The notes beneath the pieces are model-generated. The model had not been told where the DNA came from, did not search any database, and saw only the letters and a program-made list of their open reading frames with translations. A stretch of 64,000 bases of DNA from Hyaloraphidium curvatum SAG 235-1 (Eukaryota; Fungi; Monoblepharomycota). The position numbers and the translations under genes are program-made. Positions 7,222 to 48,434 of this stretch are shown in pieces (position 1 is the first letter of the stretch; each line of letters opens with the position of its first letter). Where the stretch lies: contig JAIVFI010000028.1 of assembly GCA_025558095.1 (NCBI GenBank), positions 186,001-250,000 on the forward strand. The letters run 5' to 3'.

Positions 7222-7362
7222 TGGCGGGAAAGAGCTTTGTGACGGGTAAACAATGGGCCGCTACGACGAAGCGCGCGCGTTCCTGCCCCGGCTTCCCGAG
7301 CTTGGAGCCGCAGGGAAAGCTCCTCCGCCTCTACATCGAAACGAAAAAGACGCGACGGAAAG

Positions 7363-8448: not shown

Positions 8449-8462
8449 AGTTGGACACCGTC

Positions 8463-9096
8463 CTACTGCTGCTTCCTGCCATCGGGTCCGCTTTCCGCCC
8501 CTGTCCCAGCTCTTCGCCCCGTCTTCATGGCCGCCAGGATCTCATCCGCGTCCAGGAACCTCGCCAGAACATGCTGTGTCGGGAGAAGGCAGGCTTCCTC
8601 TTCCGCGATATCAGGAGCGGAAGTCCCCGCCACGTCCCGATGGAGTTCTTTCGTTCCCCAAAAGGTGTAGCGTGTCCGCGCAACCGCCGAATAGACGGCC
8701 TCGCGCACCGGCCGCGGGAAGCACAGTCCCGCCCTCCCCAGCGCGGGCCACCACCCCGACAGCCCGCAGGCCACCCTGAGCGCCGCATCCGAGCCCCGCC
8801 ACGCGTCCCCGCGCTCGTCGATCAGCAGGATCGACGTGAGCACGTCGTCCTTGGTCAGCCCGCAGCTTTCGAGGAGCGGCTCCGCCGCGCGGGATTGGAG
8901 GGCCGCGAACCGGAATCGGCCGGGCGCCGGGTCGCGGGCCACCACGAAGCGGACGACGGCATCGCAGAGGTTGCAGACGCCGTCGAAAATCAGCACCGGA
9001 TGGGCTGCTTCGCCGTCTGCCGTGGTCGGCGCGGAGAGCTCGATCGCGCCGAGTGTGCGCGATTCGCCGCCGTCGTCCCGCCGCGCTGTCCCCCAT
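8463..9096 (-). CDS. DCC1-like thiol-disulfide oxidoreductase (DUF393)
   Basis: VLIFDGVCNLC (DxxCxxC), RFRFAALQS, SDAALR, YSAVARTRYTFWG. The only nearby ATG (9096) is 1 nt out of frame in a G5 run, so the start is uncertain. Confidence 0.75.
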
Positions 9097-9152
9097 TACA
9101 AACACAAGCCGAGGCGCGTGTGCTTCCCGGTTCTTTTGTCGAAGACGCGACG

Positions 9153-10667
9153 ATGTTGTCGCCCGCGGAGCTCCGCGCGGCGCTGCCGTTTGTGCCGTCG
9201 CCGCCGCCGGAATCGAGGAGCTCCCCTTTCGGAGACGACGATGCGGACCGCGTCGCAGAAACGCTGTGGGGGACGCTCGGCGAATCCGAACCCGACCCCC
9301 CGACCGCCGCGGAGCTGCTCGACGCCGCGTCGCGCACCTCGCCGCTGCTGGGCGCCGTCGCGCGCGGCTTCCTCCCTATTGAGCTGCTGATCCGCCATGG
9401 ATGGGTCATTGCCGTCCAGCCGCTCATGTCGGCCCTGCAGCTGGCCATCGTAGCCTCCTTCCCCGCACAGGCTGGGACGACAGCCCCCTTTGGAGCCGCC
9501 AACATCGCCGTCAGCTCGACCGCCATTGCCCTCGTCTGCCTCGCGCTGTTCTACCCCTTTTGGAAGCAGCTTGGCGGGATCTACCGCACCCAGGCGGACC
9601 TCCGCCGGCATCAACTCGCCCTCCTTTGGCGCTGGCAGGCGCTCGCGAACATGGCGGCTGCACAGAAGGACGGGGAGCGGCCGTCCACGCCAACGCCAAG
9701 CGAGACAAGGCTTCTCCGGCACGCTCCGGGGAACGCCGCGTGCCCTTGCCCTCTGCCTGAGTGTGCCGGATCCGTCGGCCGGCAGCAGGGGTTGCTGACT
9801 TTGGGCGACTTTATTGTCCGGGGCCTGATGCTCTGGGCATTTGGCGTCCACGTAACGCCGCTGTGGACGCCCATGGTCGCCGCCGGGGTTCTGTGGCGAA
9901 CGTGGTGGGGTGCGCTTCTCGGAACACTGTGCCTTGCCGTGATCCTGTTTTGGGCCGTCTGCAATATGGCGAGGGTGTTCAGGATCACTCGGCCGCCGGT
10001 CATGGGGCTTTCCAGCAGGCTCATCTGCCGCGCAGTCGCTCTGCAAGTGCGCGATGTGCTGGATCTCTATCGGCGCATCCCAGAACAACAAGGGCTCGGC
10101 CAAGAGATTGGCTACGTGGAATGGGATTCGCTGTACGCTATGCTGGACAACATTTCTCACGCCCTCGCGTCGAACCAAGCGGGCTCCGTGGCCGGCTTCC
10201 ACCTGATGCAAATCACCCCGCTCTCCCTGGTTCCTGCAGCCATAATGAACCTCGCCGCAGGCGGCTGTGTCCCCCTGTGGGAACTCGCGACGCTCCTGTG
10301 GTACCTGTACTTCACCGTGGACGCGCTGATGACCTACGCCGCCGCCAACGCCCGCATCGGCGCCGTCTCCGCCGTCCTCCGCGATGGCGCCGACGCCGCC
10401 CGCGCGCTCGCCATCCGCGCGGCGGACGCGGACGTCCGCCGCGGCGGGAACGGGGATCCCGCGCTGCGATCGGCTCTGGAGGGCCACGCGGCACGGCTGG
10501 AGGCCCGCGCGGGACGCTGGGCTCCGGCCAGGTTCGTGGGAGTGGAGGTGACCTACGGCACAGTGCGCGCGCTGGTTGCGACGCTGGTGACGGTGGCCTT
10601 TGCGATCTGGGGCATGCTCCGCGGCCTCGGCGTGACGGTTGTGCTCGAGTCTTACTGTTATGCGTGA
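9153..10667 (+). CDS. Multi-pass membrane protein (about 7 TM) of a lineage-expanded family; possible GRL/7TM-ion-channel-like
   Basis: 504-aa intronless ORF with repeated hydrophobic helices. Split final helix PARFVGVEVTYGTVRALVATLVTVAFAIW. Homologous 3' fragments at about 48454 and 50870. Confidence 0.6.
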   Translation: MLSPAELRAALPFVPSPPPESRSSPFGDDDADRVAETLWGTLGESEPDPPTAAELLDAASRTSPLLGAVARGFLPIELLIRHGWVIAVQPLMSALQLAIVASFPAQAGTTAPFGAANIAVSSTAIALVCLALFYPFWKQLGGIYRTQADLRRHQLALLWRWQALANMAAAQKDGERPSTPTPSETRLLRHAPGNAACPCPLPECAGSVGRQQGLLTLGDFIVRGLMLWAFGVHVTPLWTPMVAAGVLWRTWWGALLGTLCLAVILFWAVCNMARVFRITRPPVMGLSSRLICRAVALQVRDVLDLYRRIPEQQGLGQEIGYVEWDSLYAMLDNISHALASNQAGSVAGFHLMQITPLSLVPAAIMNLAAGGCVPLWELATLLWYLYFTVDALMTYAAANARIGAVSAVLRDGADAARALAIRAADADVRRGGNGDPALRSALEGHAARLEARAGRWAPARFVGVEVTYGTVRALVATLVTVAFAIWGMLRGLGVTVVLESYCYA

Positions 10668-13591: not shown

Positions 13592-13781
13592 TGCGCAAGG
13601 TCGCGATGCGACGCGCGGGGCAGAGTGAGTGGGGGGCAGTTCTCGGCAGTCACTCAGGGGCCGGGGTCCCGCGGGCCAACCACGGAAACGCCGTCGCGAC
13701 CCCGCCCGGCTTGGCGCCATTCGTTCGGCACTACAAAAAGCCGGATCGCCGCCGCATTCCACTTTGCTTCAATCGTCCAGC

Positions 13782-16030
13782 ATGGATTCGCCTCTCCGCG
13801 GTTACTCGGTCGCCGTCGCGGGCGAGTCGCTGGCGTCGGCGCTCGCCGCGCGGCTGCTGCACGACCAGGGGGCGCGCGTCGCGCTCGTCGGCTTCGGCGG
13901 CACTGTCGACGCGGGCCTCGTGCCGCCGCCGGCGTACCTGACGCGGGACATCGATGCTGTCGCGTCGCTGCAGGCCGCGGGCGCGGTCGACGCGATCGTG
14001 GTCGACTTGCGCGCGGCGCCGCCCGCGGTGCTCGCGGCCGTCGAGGCGCTCTCTCCCGCCGGCAGCTGCGACAGCCCCGATCACGCGCACGTCGCCAACG
14101 GCACGGCCGCAGCGACCGTGGTGCGCATCGCCGCCTTCGCAGGCGACGACCCGCGCGGCCCGCACGCCTCCGAGGGCGAGCTCGGCGCCGCCACAGGCCT
14201 GCTCACCGACGTGCACTACGTCCGCGCGCGCATGGGCGCCGCGCCCGTCGGCACCGCGCTGCCGCTCGCCAGCGTGTACGGCGGCGTCTGGGCTGCGATC
14301 GGCTGCGCCGCCGCCCTGGTGCGCAGCCTCCGCGGCGGCGGGGCGTCGGCAATCGACGTGCCGCTGGCCGACGCGGCCATGTCGGCCCTGGGTGGGATCG
14401 CCTTCCGCGTGTGGGACGCCCCCGAAAAGTACCGCCTCATGCCCGACGAGCGCCCGGCGCCCCCCGACGATGCCCTGGTCGCACGCGTGCTGGCCAACAT
14501 GGACCGCCTGGGCACGCCGCTGTTTGCGAGCTACCCGTGCGCCGACGGCCGCCGCATCTTCTTCAACGGCGTCGACCACGCGCAGCACAGCGCCCTTCTG
14601 TTCCGCTCGCTGGGCCTCGAGGCGGACCTGCGCGCCCTGGGTATCGCCTTCTCGGGCGACCACTACGCCCCCTCGCAAACCACGCCGCCGATCGTATCCA
14701 ACTGGAACACGTGGAGCCCCGAGACCGTGTCCGCGGTGCGGGAGCTCCTCTCGGCCGCCTTCCTGTCGCGCCCCGCCGCCGAGTGGGAGGAGCTGCTTTG
14801 CTCCGCCGGCGTGCCCGCGGCCCTGGTCCGCACCACGGACGAGTACATGTGCATCCCCGCGCTGCGCGAGGCCGGGGTCACCGAGCCCGACGGGGACGGT
14901 GCGAGGCCGGGGACGTTCGTGGGGACGAGGAGGTTGCAGGACGATAGGGGGAAGTTGGAACTGCCGCCGCTGAAGAAAGAGGAACGGCCGCTCGCTGGGG
15001 TGGAGGTGATGGATGCAGCGTCGGTGATTGCGGGGCCGGTCGCGGCGAGGGTGCTGGCCGAGCTTGGAGCCAGAGGTGATCCTTCCGCATGCGTTGCATC
15101 CAGGCGATCCACTCACGCATGGCTTCCGCTTCCCTCGCTACACCAGTGGTCAGGATCGAGACGCCGGCTCCGGGCGTCGGCCCCCGCATGACCCTGTGGT
15201 GGGGCGTCGACCTCAACCGCGGCAAGCTTTCGCACGTCGCGGACCTCAAGACCCCCTCCGGCCGCGCGCGCGCGCTCTCCTTCTTCCCCCCCGGCGGCCC
15301 GCACGCCGTCATCCACAACAAGCTCCCGCAGGTCGCCGCCCGCCTCGGCCTCTCCCCCGCCGACCTCGCCGCCGGCGGCGCGCGCGCGGTGGCCCAGATC
15401 ACCGCCTTCGGCGGCCCCCGCCCCGGCCCGTGGTCGCACCGCCCCTCCTTCGACCCCGTGCTCCAGGCCGCGGGGGGCATCATGGCGCGGTACGGCACCC
15501 CCGAGGCGCCGCAGCTGCATGCCATCGCGAGCTGCATCGATTACCTGACGGGGTACCTGGCCGCGTTCGGGACCCTGTGCGGGCTCGCCGCGGCGCTGAG
15601 GGACGGGGGGGCGTGGCATGCGGAGACGTCGCTGGCGAGGGCGACGCTGTGCATCCAGGCGCCGTTCGCGACCGGCAGAGCAGGGGATGAGCCCGGGGGG
15701 CAGGATGCTGCCACGACGGGGTGGGGGGACCGGATGGAGAAGAAAGGAGACGGGTGGGTGCTGGTGACCGATGGTGGGAAGGAGGTGCGGGTCTTGGACC
15801 ATCATGCGCTGTTGGCCGAGCGAAGCTACGATCTGAAGGGCGGGAAGCCGCCGCCGGGGTCGGTGCGCATCCGGAAGGAGCAGCACCCGGTGCTGGGCCG
15901 GATCTCTACGGTGGATCCGACCTGGCTGAGGGCCGATTGGGAGGCGCCTGATTTGTGGATGATGCCGTGGCCGGGGCAGGACGACACACAGAAGCAGCCG
16001 TCGGGCTGGCCGGCAAGCCTGCCCCCTTGA
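13782..16030 (+). CDS. Tandem-domain class III CoA-transferase, DddD-like
   Basis: Two CaiB-like halves: LPLASVYG..IDVPLADA..SYPCADGR, and PLAGVEVMDAASVIAGP..NRGK..SFDPVLQAAGGIM. Intron at 15076-15146. Confidence 0.8.
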
Positions 16031-34827: not shown

Positions 34828-36054
34828 CTATGTCGCCACTGCAAGGGATGTCAGCGTGGATCCGCTCTCCGCGAGCGCAAGCCTCACCTGGCGGTATGTC
34901 CGCGACTTGACTCGCGTACTGCCGATCATAAGCGAGAGCGATGCGCAGGCGGAGGTGGGACCCACCTTGTCGAACATCCACCTGTACTTCCACTCGTCCT
35001 TCGGCAGCCCCGGGCAGGCGAAGTTTGCCCTGTAAGCCTCCACCTCCTCCCTCGCTTTCGGGTCATCGACCCCTTTGCGGGTCCCGTTGAACAGGGTAAA
35101 CATGTTCATCGCCCACGCGCCCGCGATGTGCCAGATAAAGTCCCCCGGCCGCCACGGGTCCCTGTCGCGCTGGCAGTCGATCTCGACCGGATAGGCGTTG
35201 AACCTCTTCTGCGGGACCACGTATGTCCGCGAGCGCAGCTCTGCGTCCTCCCTGAGCAGCCGCACAAACTCGCCCTGCTCGTTGTCCCTGGGCGTGCGGG
35301 CCAGCAGGGTCGCGAACACGCGGCCGAGCAGGCCGAACATGTAGGGCGACGAGCGGACGAGGAAGGAGCCCGTGTTGGCCGAGTTGCAGTCCTCGGCCAC
35401 CACGAAATCCGGCAGGTGGTCCGGCCGCCCCCTCGTGTCGGCCTGCGCGGCCGCGGCGCCGCCGCACCCGTTCCCGAGCCCCGGGATCAGATCGTCGATC
35501 CGCGCGGTCATGTTCGTAATGAGCGTGTCGAGGTCCAACCACCACACGTAGGCGGCCGAGGGATACAGCTCCAGCGCCTCGATCAGAGCGCCGACCTTGA
35601 CCCAGTACCCGATGTAGCGCCCGTCGTGGCTCTTGTCGGGACGGTTCCAGCGCTTCCGGGCCATCCCGAACGGCGTCCGCGTGGGGTCCGGCGGCATCGC
35701 GTCCAGGGATTCCACGCCGCAGTCCGGCTCCCGCGGGTACAGCGCGGCGTCGCCGACGTCCACGAGGTGCGACCACGAAAACACGGGATGGAAGGCCACG
35801 CGGGGCCGGTGCAAGAGCGCGTATCGCTGCTTGTTGGCCAGCGAGCGGATCGCGTACGGCGCGTCCTTTGTCGCCGCCGTGACGATCACCACGAGCGGGC
35901 CGGGCGGCGGCGCGTCGGGGAGCGCTCCGGCGCGTAAGGCGGGCGCGGGCGCGCTCGGCGGGGCCGGCGCGGGCGGCGCGGGGCTGCGAAGCACCAGCGC
36001 CGCCGCGAACGCGCACGCGGCGAGGACGGCGCCGACGAACCACCGGCGCCGCAT
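34828..36054 (-). CDS. Glycosyltransferase family 34 (GMA12/MNN10-like), type II membrane
   Basis: Anchor WFVGAVLAACAFAAALVL, NKQRYALLH, WVKVGAL, VWWLDLDTLITN (DxD), NTGSFLVR, NEQ, FNAY, WRPGDFIWHIAG. Confidence 0.87.
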   Translation of the reverse strand: MRRRWFVGAVLAACAFAAALVLRSPAPPAPAPPSAPAPALRAGALPDAPPPGPLVVIVTAATKDAPYAIRSLANKQRYALLHRPRVAFHPVFSWSHLVDVGDAALYPREPDCGVESLDAMPPDPTRTPFGMARKRWNRPDKSHDGRYIGYWVKVGALIEALELYPSAAYVWWLDLDTLITNMTARIDDLIPGLGNGCGGAAAAQADTRGRPDHLPDFVVAEDCNSANTGSFLVRSSPYMFGLLGRVFATLLARTPRDNEQGEFVRLLREDAELRSRTYVVPQKRFNAYPVEIDCQRDRDPWRPGDFIWHIAGAWAMNMFTLFNGTRKGVDDPKAREEVEAYRANFACPGLPKDEWKYRWMFDKVGPTSACASLSLMIGSTRVKSRTYRQVRLALAESGSTLTSLAVAT

Positions 36055-36286
36055 GTGGGATGACTCGACCAGGGACGCAGTGCAAATTGATCGACGCCGC
36101 CCGGACAAACACAGATGTCCCTGGGCGGATTCCCCTTCCGATGGCCCATTCGTTGAAATCGTTCCCTTTGAACGGTGTGATGTATCTTCTCTACCGCATC
36201 GCGTGAGGAATGGGAGCCAGCTTCGCCACCCGCCGAACCATTCTTCCTTCGTGCTACATCGATCGCCCACCGCATCCGCCCCAGCC

Positions 36287-38521
36287 CTATTGGTTCTCCC
36301 CCCTCACCCGCCGCTGGTACCTCCACGCCCTCTCCCTCCACACCCTCTCCTCGTGCGCCGTCACCGGCCCCGCCACCCCCTCCCTGCTCCTCACCGCCCT
36401 CGCCACATCCACCACGGGGTCCACGGGCGCCCGCATCCTCCCCGCGCGGTCGAAATCGAACCGCGGCGCCTCCGCGGCCGGCTTCCCGGACTTTTCGGCG
36501 CGCCGGAGCTCGGCGGCCCGCGCCTCGGCCTCGAGCCGCGCGATCGTCTCCGCCGCGCGGGTCGGCATCCTCGCCGGCCGCGAACTGGGCTCCTCCAGGC
36601 CCTCGTTTCCCCCCCTCCCCGCGACGGCGGACGCGCGGTCGTACCGCTTGCCGCCCTCGGGATCGGTCGACAGGCTCAGGCGCTCCTTCCCGAGCAGGGC
36701 CAGGAGGGAAGCCGGGTCCGACGCGGCGTCGGGGGTCCGGCGGAGGGCGCGGGAAAAGGCGGGGATGTCGCGGGGCATGAGCGACAGCACGGGCTCGTGG
36801 AGGCCTGCCGCGCGGTGGGGTCAGCGACGCGACGATGGCGGGGGAGCAGGGAGGGACCGACCGAGCTCCCGGAAGATGACGCTGGCCTGGGGGGACCACT
36901 CGACCTTCCAGTAGGCGATGCCGACGGGGGTGAGGTTGTGCGCGCGCATCATCCTCAGGAAGGGCAGCGCGGCGATCCTTCGCGGGGGGGAGGGGAGGGG
37001 TCAGCGCCGGCCCCCGCGGCGGCCCCGAAGGCGGCGCAGGACGTACCTCTCCCTGATCCGATGCTTCTGCTCCCCCTCCCCGTCGTGGTCCCGAACCCAA
37101 GGCGACCTCCCCTCCACCCCCTCCACCTCCCTGCCCTCGGGCAACCGGATGTCCACCTCCCCCTCCTGCTCGCACACGACCGCCACCACCCTGTGCCACA
37201 GGTTCGGGCTCTGCTTGGCGGGGTGGGGGGGGAGGTAGGGCACGGCGCAGTGCGCGGGGTCGGCGAGGTCCAGGGTGAGGATGGGGCGCGGGGGGAGGTT
37301 GGTGTGCAGGGAGAGGAGGAGGGATTCGTACGAGGCCGTGTCGAGGCGGGGGTAGTCTGCGAAGGGGGGGGGGGGGGGGGCAAAAGCGGGGGCGACACGA
37401 TGGAGGGGAGGGTGAGAAGGGCGCGGGGGGAACGGGAGGCGCGCCGGGAGCCCACCGAGGTCCATGACGGCGACGGTCAGCAGCTTCTCCCTGCCCCGCG
37501 GCGCCGACCCGTCCGGGAAGCTCTCGATCTTGATCTTCGGGGGCGTGCGCCTGCACTCGGTGCCGTCGCCCTTGTACCTGCTGACCGGCGACATGTGCAG
37601 CGGGACGAGCGGCACGTCGGTCCGCCTGCTGAACCGCTCCGTGGCGATCCCCCGCTCCTTCTCGAACAGGGCCGTGACGGCGACCGACGGCTCGAACGCG
37701 TCGTGCAGCCCGAACAGGTCGACGAGCACCGCGTCCCGCGTCATGTGGTCCAGCAGGATGGGCAGCGTGATCTTCTGGAACACGTCCCTCTTGAGCGGCA
37801 GCAGCGCCTCGTCCTCGGGGTGCGTCCCGAACTCGCGCGCGTTGCGCGCGGGGAGCAGCTCCCTCAGCTGCGGGTCGGCGAATGCCAGCTCGTCGGCGCG
37901 GTTGCGCCTGCGCGCGGCCAGCAGCGCGCGGTCCGGGTCGGCGAGGTCCGGGTCTGCCAGGCGCGCGTCGAGCGAGGCCAGCTCGGCGCGGACCTTGGCG
38001 ACCTCTGCGTCGATCACGGCGAGGGCGAGGCGGTACGCGGCGTCTGCGGCGGATGGGGGCGGTGGTGCGGGCGCGGAGGGCGGCCCGGGTCGCGGGGCAT
38101 CGCGGGGCCCCGGTGCCTCGGAGGCCTCGCTTGCGGCGGCCGGCTGCTGTGCGGGTTCGGTGGAGTCGCCCTCGGTGGCGTGCGCCCGCCCGACGGGCCC
38201 CTCCGCCGCGATGGCGTCCGCCTTCCCCTCGGGCGCCGCGCCCTCCCGCGCGCCCTCCGCCGCCGGCACACCCGCATCCGCCGCGGCGCCCGCGGCCCCC
38301 GCCGCCCCCGCGCTTCCCTCCCCGCCCCCCGCGGCGTCCGGCCCGCCCGCGGCGAACCCGCGCGCGAACCGCGGCGCGGGGCGCGGGACCGCTCCCGCCC
38401 GCGGCGCCGCGCCCGCCCGCGGGGGGCCCGCACGCCGCGGCACCGCCGCGTGCGCGAGCAACGATAGTCGCCGGCCCGCCGCCGCGCGGAGCAGCGCGAG
38501 CGCGTCCGTGGGGGGCGCCAT
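36287..38521 (-). CDS. MRPL35: Mitochondrial ribosomal protein mL38 (PEBP-like domain), spliced
   Basis: Arg/Ala-rich presequence, TLPILLDHMT..V.VD, LLTVAVMDL|DYP, YLPPHPAK..HRVVAVVCEQ, GIAYWKVEW. Confidence 0.65.
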
Positions 38522-38751
38522 CCGGACGCGGTTTTGTTGTCGACACGACGTCTGATCGCGGGCACATCCACCCAGCTCGCGACCGCTCGAACCCGAGACG
38601 GGAACGGATCCGGCATGGACGATGGACCATCGTTGCAGATCGGGACGTCGCCTTTGCCGCGGATGGGCCCCATGCTCCCTCGGGTCACCTCCTCGATCGC
38701 CCCCGCCCGATCTCGCCCCCTCCGCACCCGATCGTGGTCGCGGCACGCCGC

Positions 38752-41118
38752 CTAGTACACGCACGGCTCCACCTCGAGCCGCACCGCAAACTCCCTCTCC
38801 ACCGCCGCCGCCACCTCGACCCCCAGCAGCCACACGTCCGCGCCCGTCGCCCCGCCCCCGTTCAGCAGCCACAGCCCGTGCTTGTCCGACACCCTCGCCC
38901 CGCCCCTCCGGCGTCCTTTGAGCCCGCACCGCTCGATCATCCACCCCGCGTGCACCAGGGTCCCCTCGGAGGCGCCGATCTCGAGACGGGAGCAATCTGG
39001 GGCGCGGGCAAGCAGCGCTCGCAGCGCATCCCCACGCATCACCGGGTTCTTAAAGAAGCTCCCCGAGCTGCACCTGCCCTCCGGATCGGGGAACGACGCG
39101 CGGCGCACCTCTTCGACCCAACGTGCCACCTGCGCAGGGGTAGGCCGATCGCACGGGTCCCGCGCCGCTCGCGCCGCAAGGGCGGGGTACGAAAGCCGGG
39201 CTACCCATGCCCAGTCGGCCCGTGGCAGCGCGAATCGCACGCTGATGATCAGATATCGCCCCTTCTCGCTCTTGAATGCCGAGTCCCTGTGCCCAAATGC
39301 GCACCGTTCGGCGTCCCAGGTCTCGAGCTTCCCCAGATGAAGGTCCACCGCATCCAGGGAGCGGAAATGGTCCGACACGGACGCGCCGTACGCACCGACG
39401 TTCTGCACCGGCGCACCGCCGGCCGTGCCGGGGATCAGCGCGAGGTTCTCGAGCCCCCCAAGGTCCTGTCCGATCGTCCACCGGACAAAGGCGTCCCACG
39501 GCTCCCCAGCACCGGCCTCCACGACCGCCTTGCCGTCTTCCGTCCCGCCAACCACCCTCCGCCCCGAGATCTCGACCCGAAGTACGGCACCTGGGAAATG
39601 ACCCCTGGGGAACAGCACGTTGCTCCCCCCGCCCAGCACCATCAGCGGCATCCGTCCCGCCAGCGCGCGGCCGGTGCGCAGGGCGTCGTCCGCGGTGCGG
39701 ATGGGGACCAGCAGGGCACAGGTGGCGGGGAGGTGCAGGGTGGTGAGCTCCGAGAGGTCGGCGTCGGCGATCGTGCCTTCCGGCAGCCCGTTCAGCACGG
39801 CATCAGGGAGAGTGCCGCACGCCGTGGCCCCGCGCAGCCGCACGACGTCCGCGCCCAGGCCCCGCAACTTGCCCTCCAGGTCCTCGTAGCCCCTGTCCAC
39901 CACGCCGGCCCTCGCGACCACCGTCGTCCCCGGCGCCGCCAGCGCCGCGATCAGCAGCGCCGCCGCGCCCCTCAGGTCCTTCCCCCTCACATGGGTCGCA
40001 CCCATCAGCACCTGCGTCCCCCGCACGTGCATATCTCCCCCTTTTGAGGAGATTTCGGCGCCCATGCGGGCGAGCTCGCCGGCGTGCGAGGTGCGCCGGG
40101 GGTACACCGCGTCTGACACGGTGCACTCGCGGCCGGGGGGGAGGAGGCAGCACAGGGCGGTGTAGGGCTGCTGCAGGTCAGTCAAGAAGGCGGGGTGGTC
40201 CCCCGCCGCAATGCTGGGCGGGGTTGGACGGACCGCGGGGGAGGTGGGTGACCGGATTCGGATGCCGTCGGGGAGGGAGTCGACGGTACATCCGGCGGCG
40301 CGGAGGGCATCGACGAGGGATTCCAGATGCTGGAGCTCGGCGCCTTGCACCAGCACGTCGCCGCCACATGCGGCCGCGGCGATCATGAAGGTGCCCGCCT
40401 CGGTGCGGTCGGGCATGACCGAGTGGGAGGCGCCGGCGAGGGTCTCGGCTCCGCGGATGCGGATGGTCCGCGTGCCGGCGCCCGAAATGGAGGCGCCCAT
40501 CTTTGTCAGGAGGGATGCGACGTCGGCCACCTCGGGGTCCAGCGCCGCGTTGTCGATAACACTCTCGCCAGGGGCCAGCGCGGCCAGCATCAGCGCGTTC
40601 ATGGTCCCCGTCACCGTCGGCCTGCGGAATTCGATGCGTGCGGCACTGATCGGCCCGCGGGCCTCGATCTCCCCGTCCTCGCCAGTGGCAACGACGGCGC
40701 CCATCTGCCGCAGCACGCCGACGTGCATGTCGAGCGGGCGCGGCCCGATGGCGCACCCCCCCGGCGGCGCGGGCAGGTGCGAGCGTCCGAGCCGTGCGGT
40801 GAGGCCGAGCAGCAGCACGGCGGCGCGGGACGCGGTGCACAGCGCCGGCGGCGGAGGCGGGGCAAGCCCCCGCGGGCACGGCCCCACGGCCACCGTCCCG
40901 TCCGGCAGCCGCCCGGCGGGGCACCCGATCGCCCGCAGCAGCCGCATCGCGCAGTCGACGTCGGCGATGCGCGGCACGTTGGCCAGCCGCGTCCTCGCGG
41001 AGCCCAGCGCCGCGGCGAACAGGCAGCCCAGCGCGGCGTTCTTGGAGCCCGCCACGGCCACCGCGCCGAGCAGCGGGCGGCCGCCGCGGACGACGAACGC
41101 GCCGCCGTCGTCGTCCAT
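38752..41118 (-). CDS. murA-murB: MurA-MurB fusion (UDP-GlcNAc enolpyruvyl transferase + UDP-N-acetylenolpyruvylglucosamine reductase), copy 1, 788 aa
   Basis: MurA: GSKNAAL, PGGCAIGPRPLDMH, PDRTEAGTF, FLTDLQ, DLRGAAAL, DRGYE. MurB: GGGSNVL, GLENLALIPGTAGGAPVQNVGAYG, FGHRDSAFK, GSFFKNP, LEVEP. Single intronless ORF. Confidence 0.95.
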   Translation of the reverse strand: MDDDGGAFVVRGGRPLLGAVAVAGSKNAALGCLFAAALGSARTRLANVPRIADVDCAMRLLRAIGCPAGRLPDGTVAVGPCPRGLAPPPPPALCTASRAAVLLLGLTARLGRSHLPAPPGGCAIGPRPLDMHVGVLRQMGAVVATGEDGEIEARGPISAARIEFRRPTVTGTMNALMLAALAPGESVIDNAALDPEVADVASLLTKMGASISGAGTRTIRIRGAETLAGASHSVMPDRTEAGTFMIAAAACGGDVLVQGAELQHLESLVDALRAAGCTVDSLPDGIRIRSPTSPAVRPTPPSIAAGDHPAFLTDLQQPYTALCCLLPPGRECTVSDAVYPRRTSHAGELARMGAEISSKGGDMHVRGTQVLMGATHVRGKDLRGAAALLIAALAAPGTTVVARAGVVDRGYEDLEGKLRGLGADVVRLRGATACGTLPDAVLNGLPEGTIADADLSELTTLHLPATCALLVPIRTADDALRTGRALAGRMPLMVLGGGSNVLFPRGHFPGAVLRVEISGRRVVGGTEDGKAVVEAGAGEPWDAFVRWTIGQDLGGLENLALIPGTAGGAPVQNVGAYGASVSDHFRSLDAVDLHLGKLETWDAERCAFGHRDSAFKSEKGRYLIISVRFALPRADWAWVARLSYPALAARAARDPCDRPTPAQVARWVEEVRRASFPDPEGRCSSGSFFKNPVMRGDALRALLARAPDCSRLEIGASEGTLVHAGWMIERCGLKGRRRGGARVSDKHGLWLLNGGGATGADVWLLGVEVAAAVEREFAVRLEVEPCVY

Positions 41119-41189
41119 CGGCCGGGGCCTTGGCCGGACGCGAGGACAGCCATGCGGACGCCGGAATTAAACAACCAACCGACGGCGGG

Positions 41190-41981
41190 ATGGGCACCGT
41201 CCGCCGGCTGGCGCAGTCTTGCTCCACGGCCGCCGCGCTGCTGCTGCTGCTGCTCCTTCCCCGGGCCCGGCGGCCCGACGCCGGCCGGCCGCCGCGGCAC
41301 CCTCGCGGCGCCCCGCTCATCGCCAACGCGACCACCGCGATCGTCGTTTCCTACCGGTACGGCCACCTCGCGGCTCACGCCCTCGAGACGGCGCTGGCCC
41401 AGACCCGCCCCTTCGATTTCATCTGGTTCGCCGACGATGCCGCCGGCGACTGCGCGCACCTCCCCGCGCTCTACCCCGAGGTCTCGTTCTTCCTCCGGCG
41501 GGAACGCCTCGGCACGGTGGCCAACTTCCAGGACCTCCTGGACCGCGTGTCCACCGAGCGCTTCGCCTTCTTCGGCGCCGACAACTGGCTCCGCGAGGAC
41601 CTGCACGAACGCCTGGCGTCGCACGCCGCGGACGCGGTCAAGTACGACCTCGCGGTCGTCGGCGACCCCCGCGGCGAGTCGTACGCCGTCCGGCACCACG
41701 GCGGCCCGGCCCGCAGGCAGATGCGCCGCGAACCGGGCTGGTGGCACTGGGACATGTCGTCGCTGCACAGCGGGTCGATGCTCCTCCGGACCGCCGCCGT
41801 GCGCGCCGCGGGGGGGTACGCGGGGACCAGCCGCAGGGCCGGGATGGGGGCCGAAGCGCGGAGGACGGAGGAGGACAGGGACCTATACGCGGCGATGCTG
41901 GCGCGCAACGCCAGCGTGGTGCACGTGCCCGAGGCGCTGCTGTACTACCGCCGGCACAGGGCAAACCACAACCCGCCATGA
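41190..41981 (+). CDS. GT2-family (GT-A) glycosyltransferase with N-terminal signal/anchor, paralog 1 (263 aa)
   Basis: AAALLLLLLL anchor, SYRYGHL..ALETALAQT.PFDFIWFADD, LGTVANF, FFGADNWL, EEDRDL, HVPEALLYYRRH. Confidence 0.85.
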   Translation: MGTVRRLAQSCSTAAALLLLLLLPRARRPDAGRPPRHPRGAPLIANATTAIVVSYRYGHLAAHALETALAQTRPFDFIWFADDAAGDCAHLPALYPEVSFFLRRERLGTVANFQDLLDRVSTERFAFFGADNWLREDLHERLASHAADAVKYDLAVVGDPRGESYAVRHHGGPARRQMRREPGWWHWDMSSLHSGSMLLRTAAVRAAGGYAGTSRRAGMGAEARRTEEDRDLYAAMLARNASVVHVPEALLYYRRHRANHNPP

Positions 41982-42560
41982 GAGGGAGGTGGGCCTCGCG
42001 GGCGTGGCCGGATCGGTTTCGCTGGGTCTCGATTCCTATTAGGCACTTCGCACGGTGGCGACTCAAGTTGTGTCGACCCCCCCGCACGTGGGACGACGGT
42101 CGGCCGGCCTCGCCGCCGCGGCTGGATGCCATCAAGTAGAAGGGCGAGGTCCACGCTCGTACCGTACCGCAGTCGTCGAAGCCACCACGCGCCAGCCTTG
42201 ACGCCGCCGCTGCAGAACCGAAAATGGATTCCCATGATCACGAATCCCGGCCGGGCTTTCTTGAGCACCGCTGGATGCCCGCAGCCGCGATTGCCGGGCA
42301 CGTCACGCGACGAACGTGCCGTTTTCGACCGGAAAGGGCAGCTGCAGAGGTGGTCTTAACCCCGGAAGCGGCCCTTTCGGAAACCACACGTGCCACGCTG
42401 CCGCTATCGGAACCGTCCCAGCGTCCGACCACCGGGAAGAATCTTGATCGGCCGTCGATGTACCGGACATTAATCGACGCAGGGTGCGGGCGATGCCCCG
42501 TTTTTCGGGACGCGTAAACAACCCGCCACCAATCGGGTCTTGGTGCGGACAAACGCCGAC

Positions 42561-43397
42561 ATGGGCATCGACCGCCGGCTCGCGCCGCCAATCGCGGTAG
42601 CCGCGTGCCTGCTGACGGCCTGGGGTCCGTGGCATGCCGCTGCCCCCGCTCCGCCGGCCGCCCCCGGCGCGGCGGGCATTCCGGGCGCCGCATCGCCAGA
42701 GTGGCCGCCCCGCCACCCGCCGGGCGAGCCGCTCATCCCGAACGCCACGACGGCGATCTTTGCCTCGTTCAAATACGGCCACCTGGCGGCCCACGCCCTC
42801 GAGACGGCGCTCGCGCAGACCCGCCCCTTTGATTTCATATGGTTCGCCGACGACGCCGCGGGCGACTGCGCGCACCTCCCAGCGCTGTACCCCGAGGTCA
42901 CCTTCATCTTGCGCCCCGTGCGCCTCGGCACGGTTGCCAACTTCCAGGACCTGCTGGACCGCGTGGCCACGGAGCGGTACCTCTTCTTTGGCGCCGACAA
43001 CTGGCTACGCGAGGACCTACACGAGAAGCTGGCATCCGCCGACGCCGACGTCGTCAAGTACGACCGGACCGTCGTCGGCGACCCGCACGGGGAATCGGGG
43101 CTGGTGCGGCACCACGGCGGCCCCACCCGCAGGCAGATGCGCCGCAGCCCCGACGGGTGGCGCTGGGACATGGCCTCGCTGCACAGCGGGTCGATGCTCC
43201 TCCGGACCGCTGCCGTGCGTGCCGCGGCGGGTTACGCGGGGACCAGCAGCAGGGCGGGGATGGGCGCCGGGGCGCGGAGGGCCAACGAGGACGCGGACCT
43301 GTACGCGGCGCTGAGGGCGCGCAACGCGAGCGTGGTGCACGTGCCGGAGGCGCTGCTGTACTACAGGCGGCACAGGGCGAATTTCAATCCGTCGTGA
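42561..43397 (+). CDS. GT2-family glycosyltransferase with N-terminal signal/anchor, paralog 2 (278 aa)
   Basis: IAVAACLLTAW anchor, Pro/Ala stem, same GT2 motifs (NEDADL). Confidence 0.85.
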   Translation: MGIDRRLAPPIAVAACLLTAWGPWHAAAPAPPAAPGAAGIPGAASPEWPPRHPPGEPLIPNATTAIFASFKYGHLAAHALETALAQTRPFDFIWFADDAAGDCAHLPALYPEVTFILRPVRLGTVANFQDLLDRVATERYLFFGADNWLREDLHEKLASADADVVKYDRTVVGDPHGESGLVRHHGGPTRRQMRRSPDGWRWDMASLHSGSMLLRTAAVRAAAGYAGTSSRAGMGAGARRANEDADLYAALRARNASVVHVPEALLYYRRHRANFNPS

Positions 43398-43820
43398 GGC
43401 GGTGCCGGATGCGCGGGATCGGCTGTACAGTATCTCGTCGTTGGATATAACATGGGATCGGCCGCCGCCGCCCCAAACCCAGAGGGATATCGCAGCCCGC
43501 CGCGCCGGGCCTCCCCGCCCATCCCTCTCCAAGCCTGCCCGTCTTCCCCGCTGGCGGTTCCGACAGCGCCTCCGCGTCCCCGAGCGCGGAGCCCAGCCCC
43601 TTCGTGGCCGGCGGGCCGGGGGTGCACGGCGCCGGCCTTGCGACGGGGCACGGGCCGGCGACCCGGCCACGCACGGGGCCGGGTGGTGGCACTGCTCTGA
43701 CGAAGCTGTAACAGAAGCGTCGTTCGGGCGATGATGGATTCGGAGTGCGCCCAACGAGCGGTCCCAAATGATCGGGTCGCTGCTTTCCCATGCTGAGGCG
43801 CCGCGCCGATCGCCCCGCCC

Positions 43821-44699
43821 TCACGACGGATTGAAGTTGGTCCTGTGCCGGCGGTAGTAGATCAGCGGCTCGGGCACGTGCACCACGGTCGCGTTGCGCC
43901 GGCGCAGCGCCTCGTACAGGTCTTGGTCCTCCGCGGTCTTCTGCACCGCGACGCCCGCCCCGGCCACGCGGGACGTTCCCTTGTACCCGCCCGCGGCGCG
44001 CACAGCCGCCGTACGGAGTAACATCGACCCGCTGTGCAGGAAGGTCATGTTCCAGTACCAGCCGTCCGCCGCGCGGGTGAGCTCCGGGCCGGCGTGGAAC
44101 TTCACCACCTCCGACGTCCCGTGGGGGTCCCCGACAATCGACCGGTCGTACTTGACCACGTCGGCGTCGGCGGATGCCAGCTTCTCGTGGAGGTCCTCGC
44201 GCAGCCAGTTGTCGGCACCGAGGAACAGGTAGCGCTCGGTCGCGACGCGGTCCAGCAGGTCCTGGAAGTTGGCCACCGTGCCGAGGCGTTCCCGCCGGAG
44301 GATGAAGGTGACCTCGGGGTAGAGCGCTGGGAGGTGCGCGCAGTCGCCCGCGGCGTCGTCGGCAAACCAGATGAAATCGAAGGGGCGGGTCTGCGAGAGA
44401 GCGGTTTCGAGGGCGTGCGCCGCCAGGTGGCCATATTTGAACGAGGCAAAGATCGCCGTCGTTGCGTTGGGGAGCAGCGGAGCGCCCGGCGGGTGCCGCG
44501 GCGGCCAGGCGGGGGGGTCGCTGTGCGCCGCGGTAGCCGGGGTTGCTGTGTCGCGTGGGGGCGCATCGTGGAGGCTAGCGGGTGGCGGCGTCGTTGTTGC
44601 CGCGGCGTTCCAGTGCATCGGGGCCGCCACGAGCAGCAACAGCGCGGCGGCGGCGGCAGCGGCAATGGGCAAGGCCCACCGGCGGGCCCCGGCGCCCAT
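43821..44699 (-). CDS. GT2-family glycosyltransferase with N-terminal signal/anchor, paralog 3 (292 aa)
   Basis: ALPIAAAAAAALLLLVAA anchor, Thr/Pro stem, same GT2 motifs (AEDQDL). Confidence 0.85.
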   Translation of the reverse strand: MGAGARRWALPIAAAAAAALLLLVAAPMHWNAAATTTPPPASLHDAPPRDTATPATAAHSDPPAWPPRHPPGAPLLPNATTAIFASFKYGHLAAHALETALSQTRPFDFIWFADDAAGDCAHLPALYPEVTFILRRERLGTVANFQDLLDRVATERYLFLGADNWLREDLHEKLASADADVVKYDRSIVGDPHGTSEVVKFHAGPELTRAADGWYWNMTFLHSGSMLLRTAAVRAAGGYKGTSRVAGAGVAVQKTAEDQDLYEALRRRNATVVHVPEPLIYYRRHRTNFNPS

Positions 44700-44895
44700 C
44701 CCGGTTGCTGCTGAAGTAGAGGGCTTCCGGCACGGAGCAACAACGTCGATTATCGTCACCGCAGCCCCCGCCCGGGTATCCGTTTCGAGCGATGCAAACG
44801 AGAAAGGGACGGATGAAACAAGGGATGCCGGCGGCTTGCGGCCATCCGGCCACTCAATCGAGGGACGAAGAGCAACAAAACAAGGCACGCCCGGG

Positions 44896-47280
44896 ATGGA
44901 GGACGACGGCGGCGCGTTTGCCGTACGCGGCGGCCGTCCGCTTTTCGGCACCGTCGCCGTGTCGGGCTCGAAAAACGCCGCGCTGGGTTGCCTCTTTGCC
45001 GCGTCCCTCGGGCGCGGCGAAACGCTCCTGGCCAACGTGCCGCGCATCGCCGACGTCGACGCGGCGATGGAGCTGCTGCGGGCCATCGGATGCCCCGCCG
45101 ACCGGTTGGCGGACGGCACGGTGGCGGCGGGGCCCATGGCCGGCCCCGGTCCGCGGGATCACCAAGCGGCGGCGGCCCCCCCAGCGGCCCTCTGCGCGCG
45201 ATTCCGGTACTCGATATTGCTGCTCGGCCTGACAACGCGCTTGGGACTCTCCTGCCTGCCCGCGCCGCCCGGGGGGTGCGCCATCGGGCCGCGCCCGCTC
45301 GACATGCACGTCGGCGTGCTGCGGGAGATGGGCGCAGTCGTTGCCATTGGCGAGGACGGGGAGATTGAGGCCCGCGGGCCGATCAGTCCCGCACGCATCG
45401 AATTCCGCAGGCCGACGGTGACGGGGACCATGAACGCGCTGATGCTGGCGGCTCTGGCCCCTGGCGAGAGTGTTATCGACAACGCGGCCGTCGACCCCGA
45501 GGTGGCCGACGTCGCATCCCTCCTGACAAAGATGGGCGCCTCCATTTCGGGCGCCGGCACGCGGACCATCCGCATCCGCGGAGCCGAGACCCTCGCCGGC
45601 GCCTCCCACTCGGTCATGCCCGACCGCACCGAGGCGGGCACCTTCATGATCGCCGCGGCCGCATGTGGCGGCGACGTGCTAGTGCAAGGCGCCGAGCTCC
45701 AGCATCTGGAATCCCTCGTCGATGCCCTCCGCGCCGCCGGATGCACCGTCGACCCCCTCCCCGACGGCATCCGAATCCGGTCACCCACCTCCCCCGCGGT
45801 CCGCCCAACCCCGCCCAGCATTGCGGCGGGGGACCACCCCGCCTTCTTGACTGACCTGCAGCAGCCCTACACCGCCCTTTGCTGCCTCCTCCCTCCCGGA
45901 AGCGCGTGCACAGTCTCAGACGGCGTGTACCCCCGGCGCACCGCGCACGCCGGCGAGCTCGCGCGGATGGGCGCCGACATCTCCTCAAAAGGGGGCACCA
46001 TGCACGTGCGCGGGACCAAGGCGCTGTTGGGCGCCACCCACGTGAGGGGGAGGGACCTGAGGGGCGCGGCGGCGCTGCTGATCGCCGCAATGGCGGCGCC
46101 GGGGACAACGGTGGTCGCGGGGGCGAGCGTGGCGGACAGGGGCTACGAGAATTTGGAGGGCAAGCTGCGCGGGCTGGGCGCGGACGTCGTTCGGCTGCGC
46201 GGGGCCACGGCGTTCGGCACTCTCCCTGATGCCGTCCTGCGCGGTCTTCCGGGCGGCACGATCGCCGACGCCGACCTCTCGGAGCTCACCACCCTGCACC
46301 TCCCCGCCACCTGCGCCCTGCTGGTCCCCATCCGCACCGCGGACGACGCCCTGCGCACCGGCCGCGCGCTGGCGGGACGGATGCCGCTGATGGTGCTGGG
46401 CGGGGGGAGCAACGTGCTGTTCCCCAGGGGTCATTTCCCAGGTGCCGTACTTCGGGTCGAGATCTCGAGGCGGAGGGTGGTTGGCGGGACGGAAGACGGC
46501 AAGGTGGTCGTGGAGGCCGGTGCTGGGGAGCCGTGGGACGCCTTTGTCCGGTGGACGATCGGACAGGGCCTTGGGGGGCTCGAGAACCTCGCGCTGATCC
46601 CCGGCACGGCCGGCGGTGCGCCGGTGCAGAACGTCGGTGCGTACGGCGCGTCCGTGTCGGACCATTTCCGCTCCCTGGATGCGGTGGACCTTCATCTGGG
46701 GAAGCTCGAGACCTGGGACGCCGAACGGTGCGCATTTGGGCACAGGGACTCGGCATTCAAGAGCGAGAAGGGGCGATATCTGATCATCAGCGTGCGATTC
46801 GCGCTGCCACGGGCCGACTGGGCATGGGTAGCCCGGCTTTCGTACCCCGCCCTTGCGGCGCGAGCGGCGCGGGACCCGTGCGATCGGCCTACCCCTGCGC
46901 AGGTGGCACGTTGGGTCGAAGAGGTGCGCCGCGCGTCGTTCCCCGATCCGGAGGGCAGGTGCAGCTCGGGGAGCTTCTTTAAGAACCCGGTGATGCGTGG
47001 GGATGCGCTGCGAGCGCTGCTTGCCCGCGCCCCAGATTGCTCCCGTCTCGAGATCGGCGCCTCCGAGGGGACCCTGGTGCACGCGGGGTGGATGATCGAG
47101 CGGTGCGGGCTCAAAGGACGCCGGAGGGGCGGGGCGAGGGTGTCGGACAAGCACGGGCTGTGGCTGCTGAACGGGGGCGGGGCGACGGGCGCGGACGTGT
47201 GGCTGCTGGGGGTCGAGGTGGCGGCGGCGGTGGAGAGGGAGTTTGGGGTGCGCCTCGAGGTCGAGCCGTGCGTGTACTAA
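44896..47280 (+). CDS. murA-murB: MurA-MurB fusion, copy 2, 794 aa
   Basis: Same catalytic motifs as copy 1. ATG at 44896 (MEDDGGAFAVRGGRPL) aligns with the copy 1 start. Confidence 0.95.
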   Translation: MEDDGGAFAVRGGRPLFGTVAVSGSKNAALGCLFAASLGRGETLLANVPRIADVDAAMELLRAIGCPADRLADGTVAAGPMAGPGPRDHQAAAAPPAALCARFRYSILLLGLTTRLGLSCLPAPPGGCAIGPRPLDMHVGVLREMGAVVAIGEDGEIEARGPISPARIEFRRPTVTGTMNALMLAALAPGESVIDNAAVDPEVADVASLLTKMGASISGAGTRTIRIRGAETLAGASHSVMPDRTEAGTFMIAAAACGGDVLVQGAELQHLESLVDALRAAGCTVDPLPDGIRIRSPTSPAVRPTPPSIAAGDHPAFLTDLQQPYTALCCLLPPGSACTVSDGVYPRRTAHAGELARMGADISSKGGTMHVRGTKALLGATHVRGRDLRGAAALLIAAMAAPGTTVVAGASVADRGYENLEGKLRGLGADVVRLRGATAFGTLPDAVLRGLPGGTIADADLSELTTLHLPATCALLVPIRTADDALRTGRALAGRMPLMVLGGGSNVLFPRGHFPGAVLRVEISRRRVVGGTEDGKVVVEAGAGEPWDAFVRWTIGQGLGGLENLALIPGTAGGAPVQNVGAYGASVSDHFRSLDAVDLHLGKLETWDAERCAFGHRDSAFKSEKGRYLIISVRFALPRADWAWVARLSYPALAARAARDPCDRPTPAQVARWVEEVRRASFPDPEGRCSSGSFFKNPVMRGDALRALLARAPDCSRLEIGASEGTLVHAGWMIERCGLKGRRRGGARVSDKHGLWLLNGGGATGADVWLLGVEVAAAVEREFGVRLEVEPCVY

Positions 47281-47556
47281 GCGGGGCAGGGTCGGGGAGG
47301 AGAGAGGGGCAGTGAGGCGTCGCGCAAAACGAGGCCGAACGCCGGCCGGGAACGCTCACCACTCCCCTCGTTTTCTTCATCGCCGGCGCCCCGTCCTCCG
47401 CGCCCCCAACCGCGACAGTGCCGGCGCCTTGACTGAAGCGACCAATCTTCCTTTTGTGTCCCGGAGCCGAAGAGCGACGAACGCCACGTCACGCACGCTG
47501 CCGCAAGGGAGGACCACAAAGTCGGCATCGTCGTCAACCAGCCCGAAGAGAAGCGC

Positions 47557-48434
47557 ATGGACTTCCACCGCGAATTCTGTCTCAGCCGGGGCTCGGTGGC
47601 GCGGGCCGTCAGCCGGGGTACGCTGGAGCCTGACCTCCCCGAGGTCGCCGAATGGAAAGCCCAGGCGGTGGACTCGCGCTCATGGAAGTGCGGATACTGC
47701 GGGGCTCAATCCGTGGGAAAAATCGAGATGGCACTCGCCGCCCCGGGTATCCCCAGCAGCCCGATGCCGGTGCTGATCGTGTTCTGCTACCCAGCTTGCG
47801 CCCGTGCGGGGTGCGCGGCGCAAGCGGCCTTAACTCCGATCCCCGGTCGATGCCCCTGCTGATGAGCGGCGTGCGAGCTCTGCTGGCAGAATCGGTCGAT
47901 GAGTTCGTTGCCATCTTCCTGTGGAGGGGCTCGGAAATCGCCGAAACGCAGTACCACCTCATCCGAACCGGGAACGCCGCGCCCCTGCCCCAGATGCTGG
48001 CTGTGATCAAAGCCATTTGCGGCAGAGTTCCCGATGCGCGGAAGGACCGCGCCGGGCGGGTCCTGCAGGACTGGCACTGCGTCGGCTGCGGCTCCGTCAG
48101 CTGCGCCTTCTTCCTCGCCGCCGACGCCGCCTCGCCGCCTCGCCGGGTCTCCTCCACCACCACGGTGAAATGGGACGGCCACGTTTTCCCCCACTGCGAC
48201 GCATCTTCGTGCCGCAAGCTCGCCTTGGCCAAGGCAACGGAACGGTCCAAAGGCGACCCCAACGCGCTGATCGATGGTGGCTTTTGTGCAGCGTGCCCGG
48301 CGATTTCCACGGACCGGGGCCGCGGGATGCAGCGCTGCGGGAGGTGCAGGGTGATGAGATACTGCTCAGCGGAATGCCACCGGAGGGACTGGCCGAAGCA
48401 CAAGGCGAAGTGTGCGCCGAGGGGAGGCCAGTGA
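47557..48434 (+). pseudogene. MYND zinc-finger protein with one apparent frameshift near 47830
   Basis: WKCGYCG in one frame, and DWHCVGCG, FPHCDASSC, CAAC..MQRCGRCRVMRYCSAECHRRDWPKHKAKC in another. Confidence 0.65.

Follow-up and report, generated by a model that had tools for sequence, protein, structure and literature searches.

The assembly of Hyaloraphidium curvatum, a freshwater member of the Monoblepharomycota, a lineage of zoosporic fungi, comprises 31.9 Mb in 55 contigs. We analyzed a window of 64,000 nucleotides from this fungus (strain SAG 235-1; positions 186,001 to 250,000 of contig 28, JAIVFI010000028.1, 607 kb), which contains a block of five genes related to bacterial peptidoglycan synthesis and to glycosyl transfer. 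Two inverted copies of a gene that joins a MurA and a MurB domain in one polypeptide (MurAB) flank three paralogous GT-A glycosyltransferases (GTs). The gene order MurAB(-), GT1(+), GT2(+), GT3(-), MurAB(+), which had been proposed in an earlier note on this DNA, was recovered in full from the open reading frame (ORF) listing and the Pfam and NCBIfam matches. Exactly two MurAB copies and five GT copies are present in the whole genome. The features of the block, in window positions, are as follows.

38752..41118, minus strand: left MurAB copy, an intronless ORF of 788 amino acids (aa) with a MurA-MurB linker of about 15-20 aa (Pfam, NCBIfam and structure alignments).
39826..41097, minus strand: MurA domain of the left copy (aa 8-431), aligned to residues 4-421 of H. 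influenzae MurA (2rl1).
38758..39765, minus strand: type I MurB domain of the left copy (aa 452-787), aligned to the P. aeruginosa (4jay) and E. coli (1mbb) enzymes.
41119..41189: divergent spacer, 71 bp between the start codons of MurAB(-) and GT1(+), a putative shared promoter (ORF coordinates).
41190..41981, plus strand: GT1, 263 aa, a GT-A glycosyltransferase with an N-terminal anchor.
42561..43397, plus strand: GT2, 278 aa, a tandem paralogue of GT1 (Pfam, AlphaFold2 model).
43821..44699, minus strand: GT3, 292 aa, head-to-head with MurAB(+).
44700..44895: divergent spacer, 196 bp between the start codons of GT3(-) and MurAB(+) (ORF coordinates).
44896..47280, plus strand: right MurAB copy, 794 aa, with an ATG homologous to the start of the left copy.
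38748..40859 (left arm) and 45173-47284 (right arm): inverted repeat of 2112 nt, 95% complementary.

A 969-aa ORF that opens at 44371 is a mere upstream extension of MurAB(+) overlapping GT3, and the ATG at 44896 is the preferred start.

In bacteria, MurA and MurB convert UDP-N-acetylglucosamine (UDP-GlcNAc) and phosphoenolpyruvate (PEP) to UDP-N-acetylmuramic acid (UDP-MurNAc), the first committed steps of peptidoglycan synthesis. Fungi are rich in UDP-GlcNAc, the precursor of chitin, and we know of no fungus reported to synthesize muramic acid. Both MurAB copies matched the Pfam families EPSP_synthase (E 2e-63), FAD_binding_4 (1.3e-13) and MurB_C (3.3e-22). When both domains were checked against curated profiles, cut-offs were exceeded for MurA (NF006873, 390.1 bits against 297, covering model positions 4-417 of 419) and for MurB (NF000755, 297.9 bits against 277; TIGR00179, 159.6 bits against 144.5). 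Each domain also aligned end to end with solved structures.

Both catalytic centers look intact at the level of the residues. In the MurA domain, K26, C122, R127, D314 and R409, corresponding to Lys22, Cys115, Arg120, Asp305 and Arg397 of the E. coli enzyme, are kept in both copies, as are the Cys loop motif GGCAIGPRP and 37 of the 40 near-invariant columns (at least 95% conserved in 138 diverse bacterial MurA). The MurB domain is of type I, the kind found in E. coli and Pseudomonas, and alignment with E. coli 1mbb places R611, S687 and E784 at the catalytic Arg159, Ser229 and Glu325, with Y644 and N691 retained at Tyr190 and Asn233. The cysteine at the fosfomycin site predicts that the fungal enzyme would be sensitive to fosfomycin.

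The two MurAB proteins are 91% identical, and with a ratio of nonsynonymous to synonymous divergence (dN/dS) of 0.31 at a dS of 0.14, the fusion is under purifying selection. The first 240 nt at the 5' ends of the two genes are only 82% alike, and the gene bodies have a lower dS than these 5' ends and than the GTs. Because the differences between the repeat arms are thus unevenly spread and the dS of the MurAB bodies is low, gene conversion within the inverted repeat is suggested. MurAB has no leader or targeting peptide and no N-x-S/T sequon; the view of the earlier note that the fusion lacks a targeting peptide was borne out.

When 1.84 billion cluster representatives were searched exhaustively with phmmer, the fusion itself was returned, followed by single-domain proteins only, so that no other protein among these representatives matched both the MurA and the MurB domains; a word-indexed search agreed. 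The best MurA match scored 293 bits at no more than 47% identity, and the best MurB match was 51% identical. Looking up the fusion's database copy by exact match gave no record, a scan of viral contigs with the fusion revealed no relative, and literature searches found nothing joining Hyaloraphidium with Mur genes or muramic acid. The remark of the earlier note that its author was aware of no described system of this kind is thus supported for these representatives and for the literature searched.

The best MurB cluster was Burkholderia, and the named proteins among the 120 best MurB matches were all from Betaproteobacteria or labelled merely Pseudomonadota. A quick tree placed the fungal MurB pair inside this group, beside Comamonadaceae-like sequences (Shimodaira-Hasegawa-like approximate likelihood ratio test (SH-aLRT) support 87); the stem leading to the pair measured 2.44 changes per site. 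No donor was resolvable in the MurA tree, in which the stem measured 1.84 changes per site and identities ranged from 36 to 47% across many phyla. The transfer is old, since identity to any bacterium is only 45-51%. In the same MurA tree, sequences from lake metagenome-assembled genomes titled Bifidobacterium, Rhizobium and Erythrobacter clustered tightly with Polynucleobacter; these three taxon labels are probably wrong.

The GTs of the block scored 20.2-20.4 bits against Pfam Glycos_transf_2 (PF00535), just under the gathering cut-off of 23.3, while precomputed hits give PF00535 for one fungal copy and all bacterial relatives. The AlphaFold2 model of GT2 (predicted local distance difference test score 83.7) has a GT-A fold, and its best Foldseek match in the PDB was 6p61, an uncharacterized Leptospira transferase, followed by TarP, TarS and SpsA, with a probability of 1.00. 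The family to which the GTs belong is about 200 aa long and carries the invariant motifs YGHLA, DDxxGDC, GADNW and YYRRH; DD, GADNW (D-N rather than D-x-D) and ED, whose roles we infer, are invariant throughout. Searches of PHROGs and NCBIfam with the GTs returned no family. Over the catalytic domain, the fungal proteins are 43-51% identical to phage and bacterial relatives (best tblastn or BLASTP segment).

The nearest clusters in the protein atlas are 83-100% viral, with members mostly of tailed phages, and genomic relatives occur chiefly in freshwater Burkholderiales, Polynucleobacter among them. The five fungal GTs group as a single clade (SH-aLRT 100) with a long stem; this clade falls closest to a phage-type set and is not part of the main betaproteobacterial clade. 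Pairs of fungal GTs gave dN/dS of 0.14-0.43 at dS of 0.10-0.92. The closest non-fungal GT was found on a phage contig from a public run (7034-10143), in a module comprising a methyltransferase, a polysaccharide deacetylase and the GT; this module lies two genes upstream of the large terminase, with the GT adjoining the deacetylase gene, and hints that the family modifies host surface polysaccharide.

Compared with these relatives, the fungal GTs have an extra N-terminus of 40-75 aa and a small insertion. They alone carry a basic N-terminus followed by a hydrophobic segment (Kyte-Doolittle hydropathy 1.8-2.7, residues 5-26), and only they have a Pro-rich stem. Their N-x-S/T sequons, likewise confined to them, number 2-4, and two are common to all five copies. 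This pattern is that of a type II Golgi or endoplasmic reticulum (ER) transferase, a topology predicted from the sequence. The earlier note had described these proteins as signal-anchored members of glycosyltransferase family 2; the N-terminal anchors and the GT-A fold stood, whereas the Pfam gathering score of that family was not reached. The MurAB and GT proteins are expected in different compartments.

Repeat analysis indicated that the duplicated unit is the head-to-head MurAB-GT pair, GT2 being an additional tandem copy. The proposal that the GTs had been duplicated together with MurAB was upheld in this form, the start codons of the two head-to-head pairs being 71 and 196 bp apart.

A whole-genome six-frame search found no match for the Mur ligases (PF08245), MraY (TIGR00445), MurG (TIGR01133) or a transpeptidase (PF00905), and for Ddl (PF07478) merely weak ATP-grasp matches of at most 41 bits. 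This search also missed the folylpolyglutamate synthase expected in the host, as intron-split genes can escape it; it would not miss intronless bacterial-type genes such as MurAB. The absence of MurC, MurD, MurE, MurF, MraY and MurG, noted before for the window, thus extends to the whole-genome search. A bacterial small-subunit (SSU) rRNA model run on the assembly for 16S genes returned only nuclear 18S copies of 1808 nt. Five such SSU copies lie on contig 1 (34313-36120, 81258-83065, 112949-114756, 180907-182714 and 260147-261954); they are of 18S length, though matched with the bacterial model, and are spaced 30-80 kb apart rather than in a tight tandem array.

The setting of the block is eukaryotic. 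Flanking and nearby genes are the following.

36821..38521, minus strand: spliced host gene with introns at about 36977-37045 and 37357-37455, defined by transcript-contig joints with GT..AG ends.
47652..48434, plus strand: MYND-finger ORF (Pfam zf-MYND, E 2.8e-9).
34828..36303, minus strand: eukaryotic Golgi-type GT34 gene of the GMA12/MNN10 family (Pfam Glyco_transf_34, E 4e-23).

A Y-family polymerase, an ABC transporter and other eukaryotic genes also lie near the block. The GC content at third codon positions (GC3) of the block genes is 0.84-0.89, inside the range of the other genes of the window. In the spliced neighbor the start codon lies at 38521 and is separated by 230 bp from the stop of MurAB(-). 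The earlier note had named it as a spliced gene for the mitoribosomal protein mL38 at this distance; the two introns, seen in transcript contigs, and the 230-bp spacing agreed, and the mL38 label was not confirmed, exon-by-exon Pfam and PDB sequence searches giving it no support. The MYND gene that it had also named was found.

Evidence of transcription came from a public run with spliced contigs, designated X1; a second, DNA-like run is designated X2. In the minus-strand neighbor, X1 contigs skip stretches of 69 nt and 99 nt with GT..AG ends on that strand; X1 is therefore a transcriptome and the neighbor is spliced. The X1 contigs extend over both MurAB copies and, in GT1, over the 3' half; the intergenic stretch 38400-38599 is empty. 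For GT1, a transcript contig spans 41507-42181 with zero mismatches. Two X1 contigs carry exactly the variant letters of the right MurAB copy, and one of them extends 407 nt beyond its last aligned base (47284), which lies 4 nt past the stop. The left copy is also transcribed, because transcript contigs match its copy-specific stretch 39748-40147 with at least 97% identity despite the 12% divergence of the two copies there. No splice joint was seen inside MurAB or GT1, consistent with intronless genes. The expression check was thus positive for both MurAB copies and GT1. That the block is nuclear and integrated, as the earlier note had argued, is supported by the 607-kb contig, the host-like GC3, the spliced neighbor and the transcript contigs.

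Two details of these contigs stand apart. The tail of the MurAB(+) transcript contig reaches the region of the same-strand MYND gene (window 47281-47690, ORF from 47557), with overlapping untranslated regions or read-through as possible causes. In the GT1-GT2 spacer, the X1 and X2 contigs both cease matching at 42207 and continue with the same 30 unlike letters, which could reflect structural or allelic variation, or a further copy of this spacer elsewhere.

On balance, we favor the explanation that the block consists of bacterial and phage genes that have been domesticated in the H. curvatum nuclear genome. MurAB is very probably a real, expressed and selected bifunctional enolpyruvyl transferase and reductase, and UDP-MurNAc is its probable product. 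We infer the identity of this product and, more weakly, its transfer by the GTs, which we put forward tentatively.

In the mechanism that we propose, the fused enzyme would be cytosolic. Its MurA domain would move enolpyruvate from PEP to the 3-OH of UDP-GlcNAc via Cys122, and its MurB domain, with FAD and NADPH, would convert the enol ether to the D-lactyl ether, giving UDP-MurNAc or a very close lactyl-N-acetylhexosamine nucleotide. Because no later peptidoglycan enzyme was found, this product would serve a non-peptidoglycan use. Each outer MurAB gene may be co-regulated with its partner GT from the short divergent spacer. The GT, fitted with a signal anchor, a Pro-rich stem and N-glycosylation sites, most probably acts in the lumen of the ER or Golgi, where its acceptors would be secretory or wall glycans. 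Wall armor, bacterial mimicry and support of a symbiont, the roles suggested in the earlier note, are speculative. That a eukaryote with no plastid, endosymbiont or peptidoglycan uses phage-type Golgi GTs to decorate its secreted or wall glycans with muramic acid or a similar lactyl-ether sugar is something we regard as possible rather than probable.

Several observations weigh against this reading, the first of which concern the enzyme. In E. coli MurB, the substrate diphosphate is contacted by Tyr190, Lys217, Asn233 and residue 288 (PMC12844806). Two of these four contacts are replaced in both fungal copies, Lys217 by S675 and residue 288 by H747, and the equivalent of Lys217 is invariant in 122 betaproteobacterial MurB relatives. 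Furthermore, 27 of the 115 columns conserved in betaproteobacterial MurB differ in the fusion. Because diphosphate contacts and conserved columns are replaced, nucleotide or substrate binding by MurB may be altered. The stricter MurA equivalog model TIGR01072 was narrowly missed (365.5 against 392.7 bits), and the region 40800-41399, which takes in the first 300 nt of MurAB(-) and the adjoining spacer, has no transcript-contig coverage.

Other observations bear on the pairing of MurAB with the GTs. A luminal GT would depend on a transporter to import UDP-MurNAc. On contigs 39 and 15, far from MurAB, there are two further GT paralogues; these copies are 97% identical over a duplication of only about 1.2 kb and sit among ordinary host genes (glutathione S-transferase, PhyH, MYND, ankyrin and ion-channel genes), and no sugar-nucleotide enzyme was found near either of them. 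In none of 85 bacterial or phage GT loci, spanning 1.09 Mb, did MurA or MurB lie within 8 kb of the GT, so that these loci do not link the GT family with murAB. The MurAB-GT pairing is therefore a product either of the fungal lineage or of an unsampled donor.

These last observations are what one would expect if MurAB and the GTs were functionally independent, a serious rival that we nevertheless consider rather unlikely. The GTs would then use a common donor, such as UDP-GlcNAc or UDP-Glc, on secretory glycans, and adjacency would reflect foreign DNA inserted at one site and then duplicated locally; the MurAB product would have a different fate, for example as a soluble metabolite, a regulator or the substrate of another enzyme. 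In addition to the paralogues without MurAB nearby and the 85 loci without an adjoining MurA or MurB, the top structural matches include TarP and TarS, which transfer GlcNAc from UDP-GlcNAc to wall teichoic acid, and different sources are indicated for the GTs and for MurB by their trees. However, it is the head-to-head unit with its spacer of 71-196 bp that was duplicated, and both copies are under purifying selection, as co-regulated partners would look.

The observations on the enzyme bear on a second rival, namely that the fusion acquired a new function and, using another nucleotide sugar or acceptor, makes a different enolpyruvyl or lactyl ether and no UDP-MurNAc. The Ser at K217 and the His at residue 288, the many changed columns that are invariant in betaproteobacteria, the MurA score under the equivalog cut-off and the very long stems of both domain trees (1.84 and 2.44 changes per site) are all in its favor, and NikO (PDB 4fqd), which matches much less strongly at 86 bits, shows that the fold accepts other substrates. 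Such a change of function nonetheless seems unlikely, given that 37 of 40 near-invariant MurA columns, including GGCAIGPRP, are kept along with the MurB catalytic triad, Y190 and N233. The changes in MurB contacts could also be tolerable since the intermediate would be supplied by the fused MurA, which could relax the need to bind it tightly.

Production of UDP-MurNAc would also be retained if the host genes fed it to a bacterial endosymbiont lacking murA and murB, as in insect symbioses. The mealybug symbiosis reportedly involves transferred mur genes, and the MurB domain groups here with the Burkholderiales, an order rich in fungal endobacteria. A transferred murA is likewise found in an ant (PMC13320244). 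This explanation is very improbable in H. curvatum: the only SSU sequences in the assembly are the 1808-nt nuclear 18S genes, with no bacterial 16S; no other Mur, MraY, MurG or penicillin-binding protein gene was found; the fusion has no targeting sequence; its 45-51% identity to any bacterium points to an old transfer; and the secretory GT partners would be left unexplained.

Finally, bacterial contamination or a chimeric assembly, to which the lack of introns in all five genes, their bacterial or phage ancestry and the lack of a single public contig bridging the block to its neighbors might point, was rejected as scarcely credible in view of the 607-kb contig with eukaryotic genes on both sides, the host-like GC3, the lack of any bacterial protein more than 51% identical, the eukaryote-type anchors and sequons of the GTs, their paralogues on three contigs in eukaryotic contexts, and the right-copy transcript contig that continues 407 nt into its own flank.

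Two further features, remote from the block genes, were observed. Three ORFs or exons matching CoA-transferase family III lie within 15 kb of one another on the plus strand of the window (1093-1800, 13629-15191 and 15080-16030), and could be parts of one or two genes with several exons, or members of a small family. On contig 39, at about 459.6-460.7 kb, an ORF has a Cys-loop ligand-gated ion channel domain (Pfam Neur_chan_LBD, E 5e-24); to our knowledge, this family of pentameric ligand-gated channels is rarely reported in fungi.

To return to the domesticated set of genes that we favor, its parts can be compared with known systems. The fusion resembles bacterial MurA and type I MurB in having full-length domains that share their fold-defining and catalytic residues; its MurB domain is closest to that of Burkholderiales. 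In bacteria, however, the two are separate enzymes, whereas in H. curvatum they form one polypeptide in a fungal nucleus where the rest of the pathway was not found, with domains no more than 47-51% identical and two MurB diphosphate contacts replaced. The GTs share motifs and the GT-A fold with the transferases of about 200 aa, of glycosyltransferase family 2, from phages and Burkholderiales, to which the fungal N-terminus, stem, sequons and insertion are additions.

Among eukaryotic mur genes, plastid cases are known. A transferred bacterial murA has been described in an ant genome (PMC13320244). The transferred genes are alike in being integrated peptidoglycan-precursor genes, several of them expressed. 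Each of those earlier cases involves an endosymbiont or plastid, present or past, or else concerns a lone gene whose use is unclear; in contrast, the H. curvatum genes combine two fused steps, are duplicated and selected, and are paired with secretory GTs, with no symbiont in the assembly. A MurB/MurC fusion enzyme is reported from Verrucomicrobium spinosum (PMC4803751). It likewise fuses consecutive Mur steps, with MurC as the partner and a bacterial host that has the full pathway, whereas the partner in H. curvatum is MurA. Transferred mur genes in eukaryotes and fusions of Mur enzymes in bacteria were thus known already; what is new here is the MurA-MurB architecture, a fungal host in which neither a symbiont nor another pathway gene was detected, and the pairing with refitted secretory GTs.

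The block offers an example of foreign-gene domestication in which enzymes were fused, a phage-type GT was given an anchor and glycosylation sites, and both came to share a divergent spacer. As a natural single chain, MurA-MurB could also be of use in enzymology. Muramic acid is treated as a bacterial signature; it serves as a biomarker of bacterial biomass and is targeted by lysozyme, innate immune receptors and fosfomycin. Its occurrence in the fungus's own glycans would be categorically new: it would define a new class of eukaryotic glycoconjugate and would weaken the standing of muramic acid as a strictly bacterial biomarker. With an intact, duplicated and transcribed two-step module, and no other peptidoglycan gene found, it becomes directly testable whether some eukaryotes make muramic acid for their own glycans.

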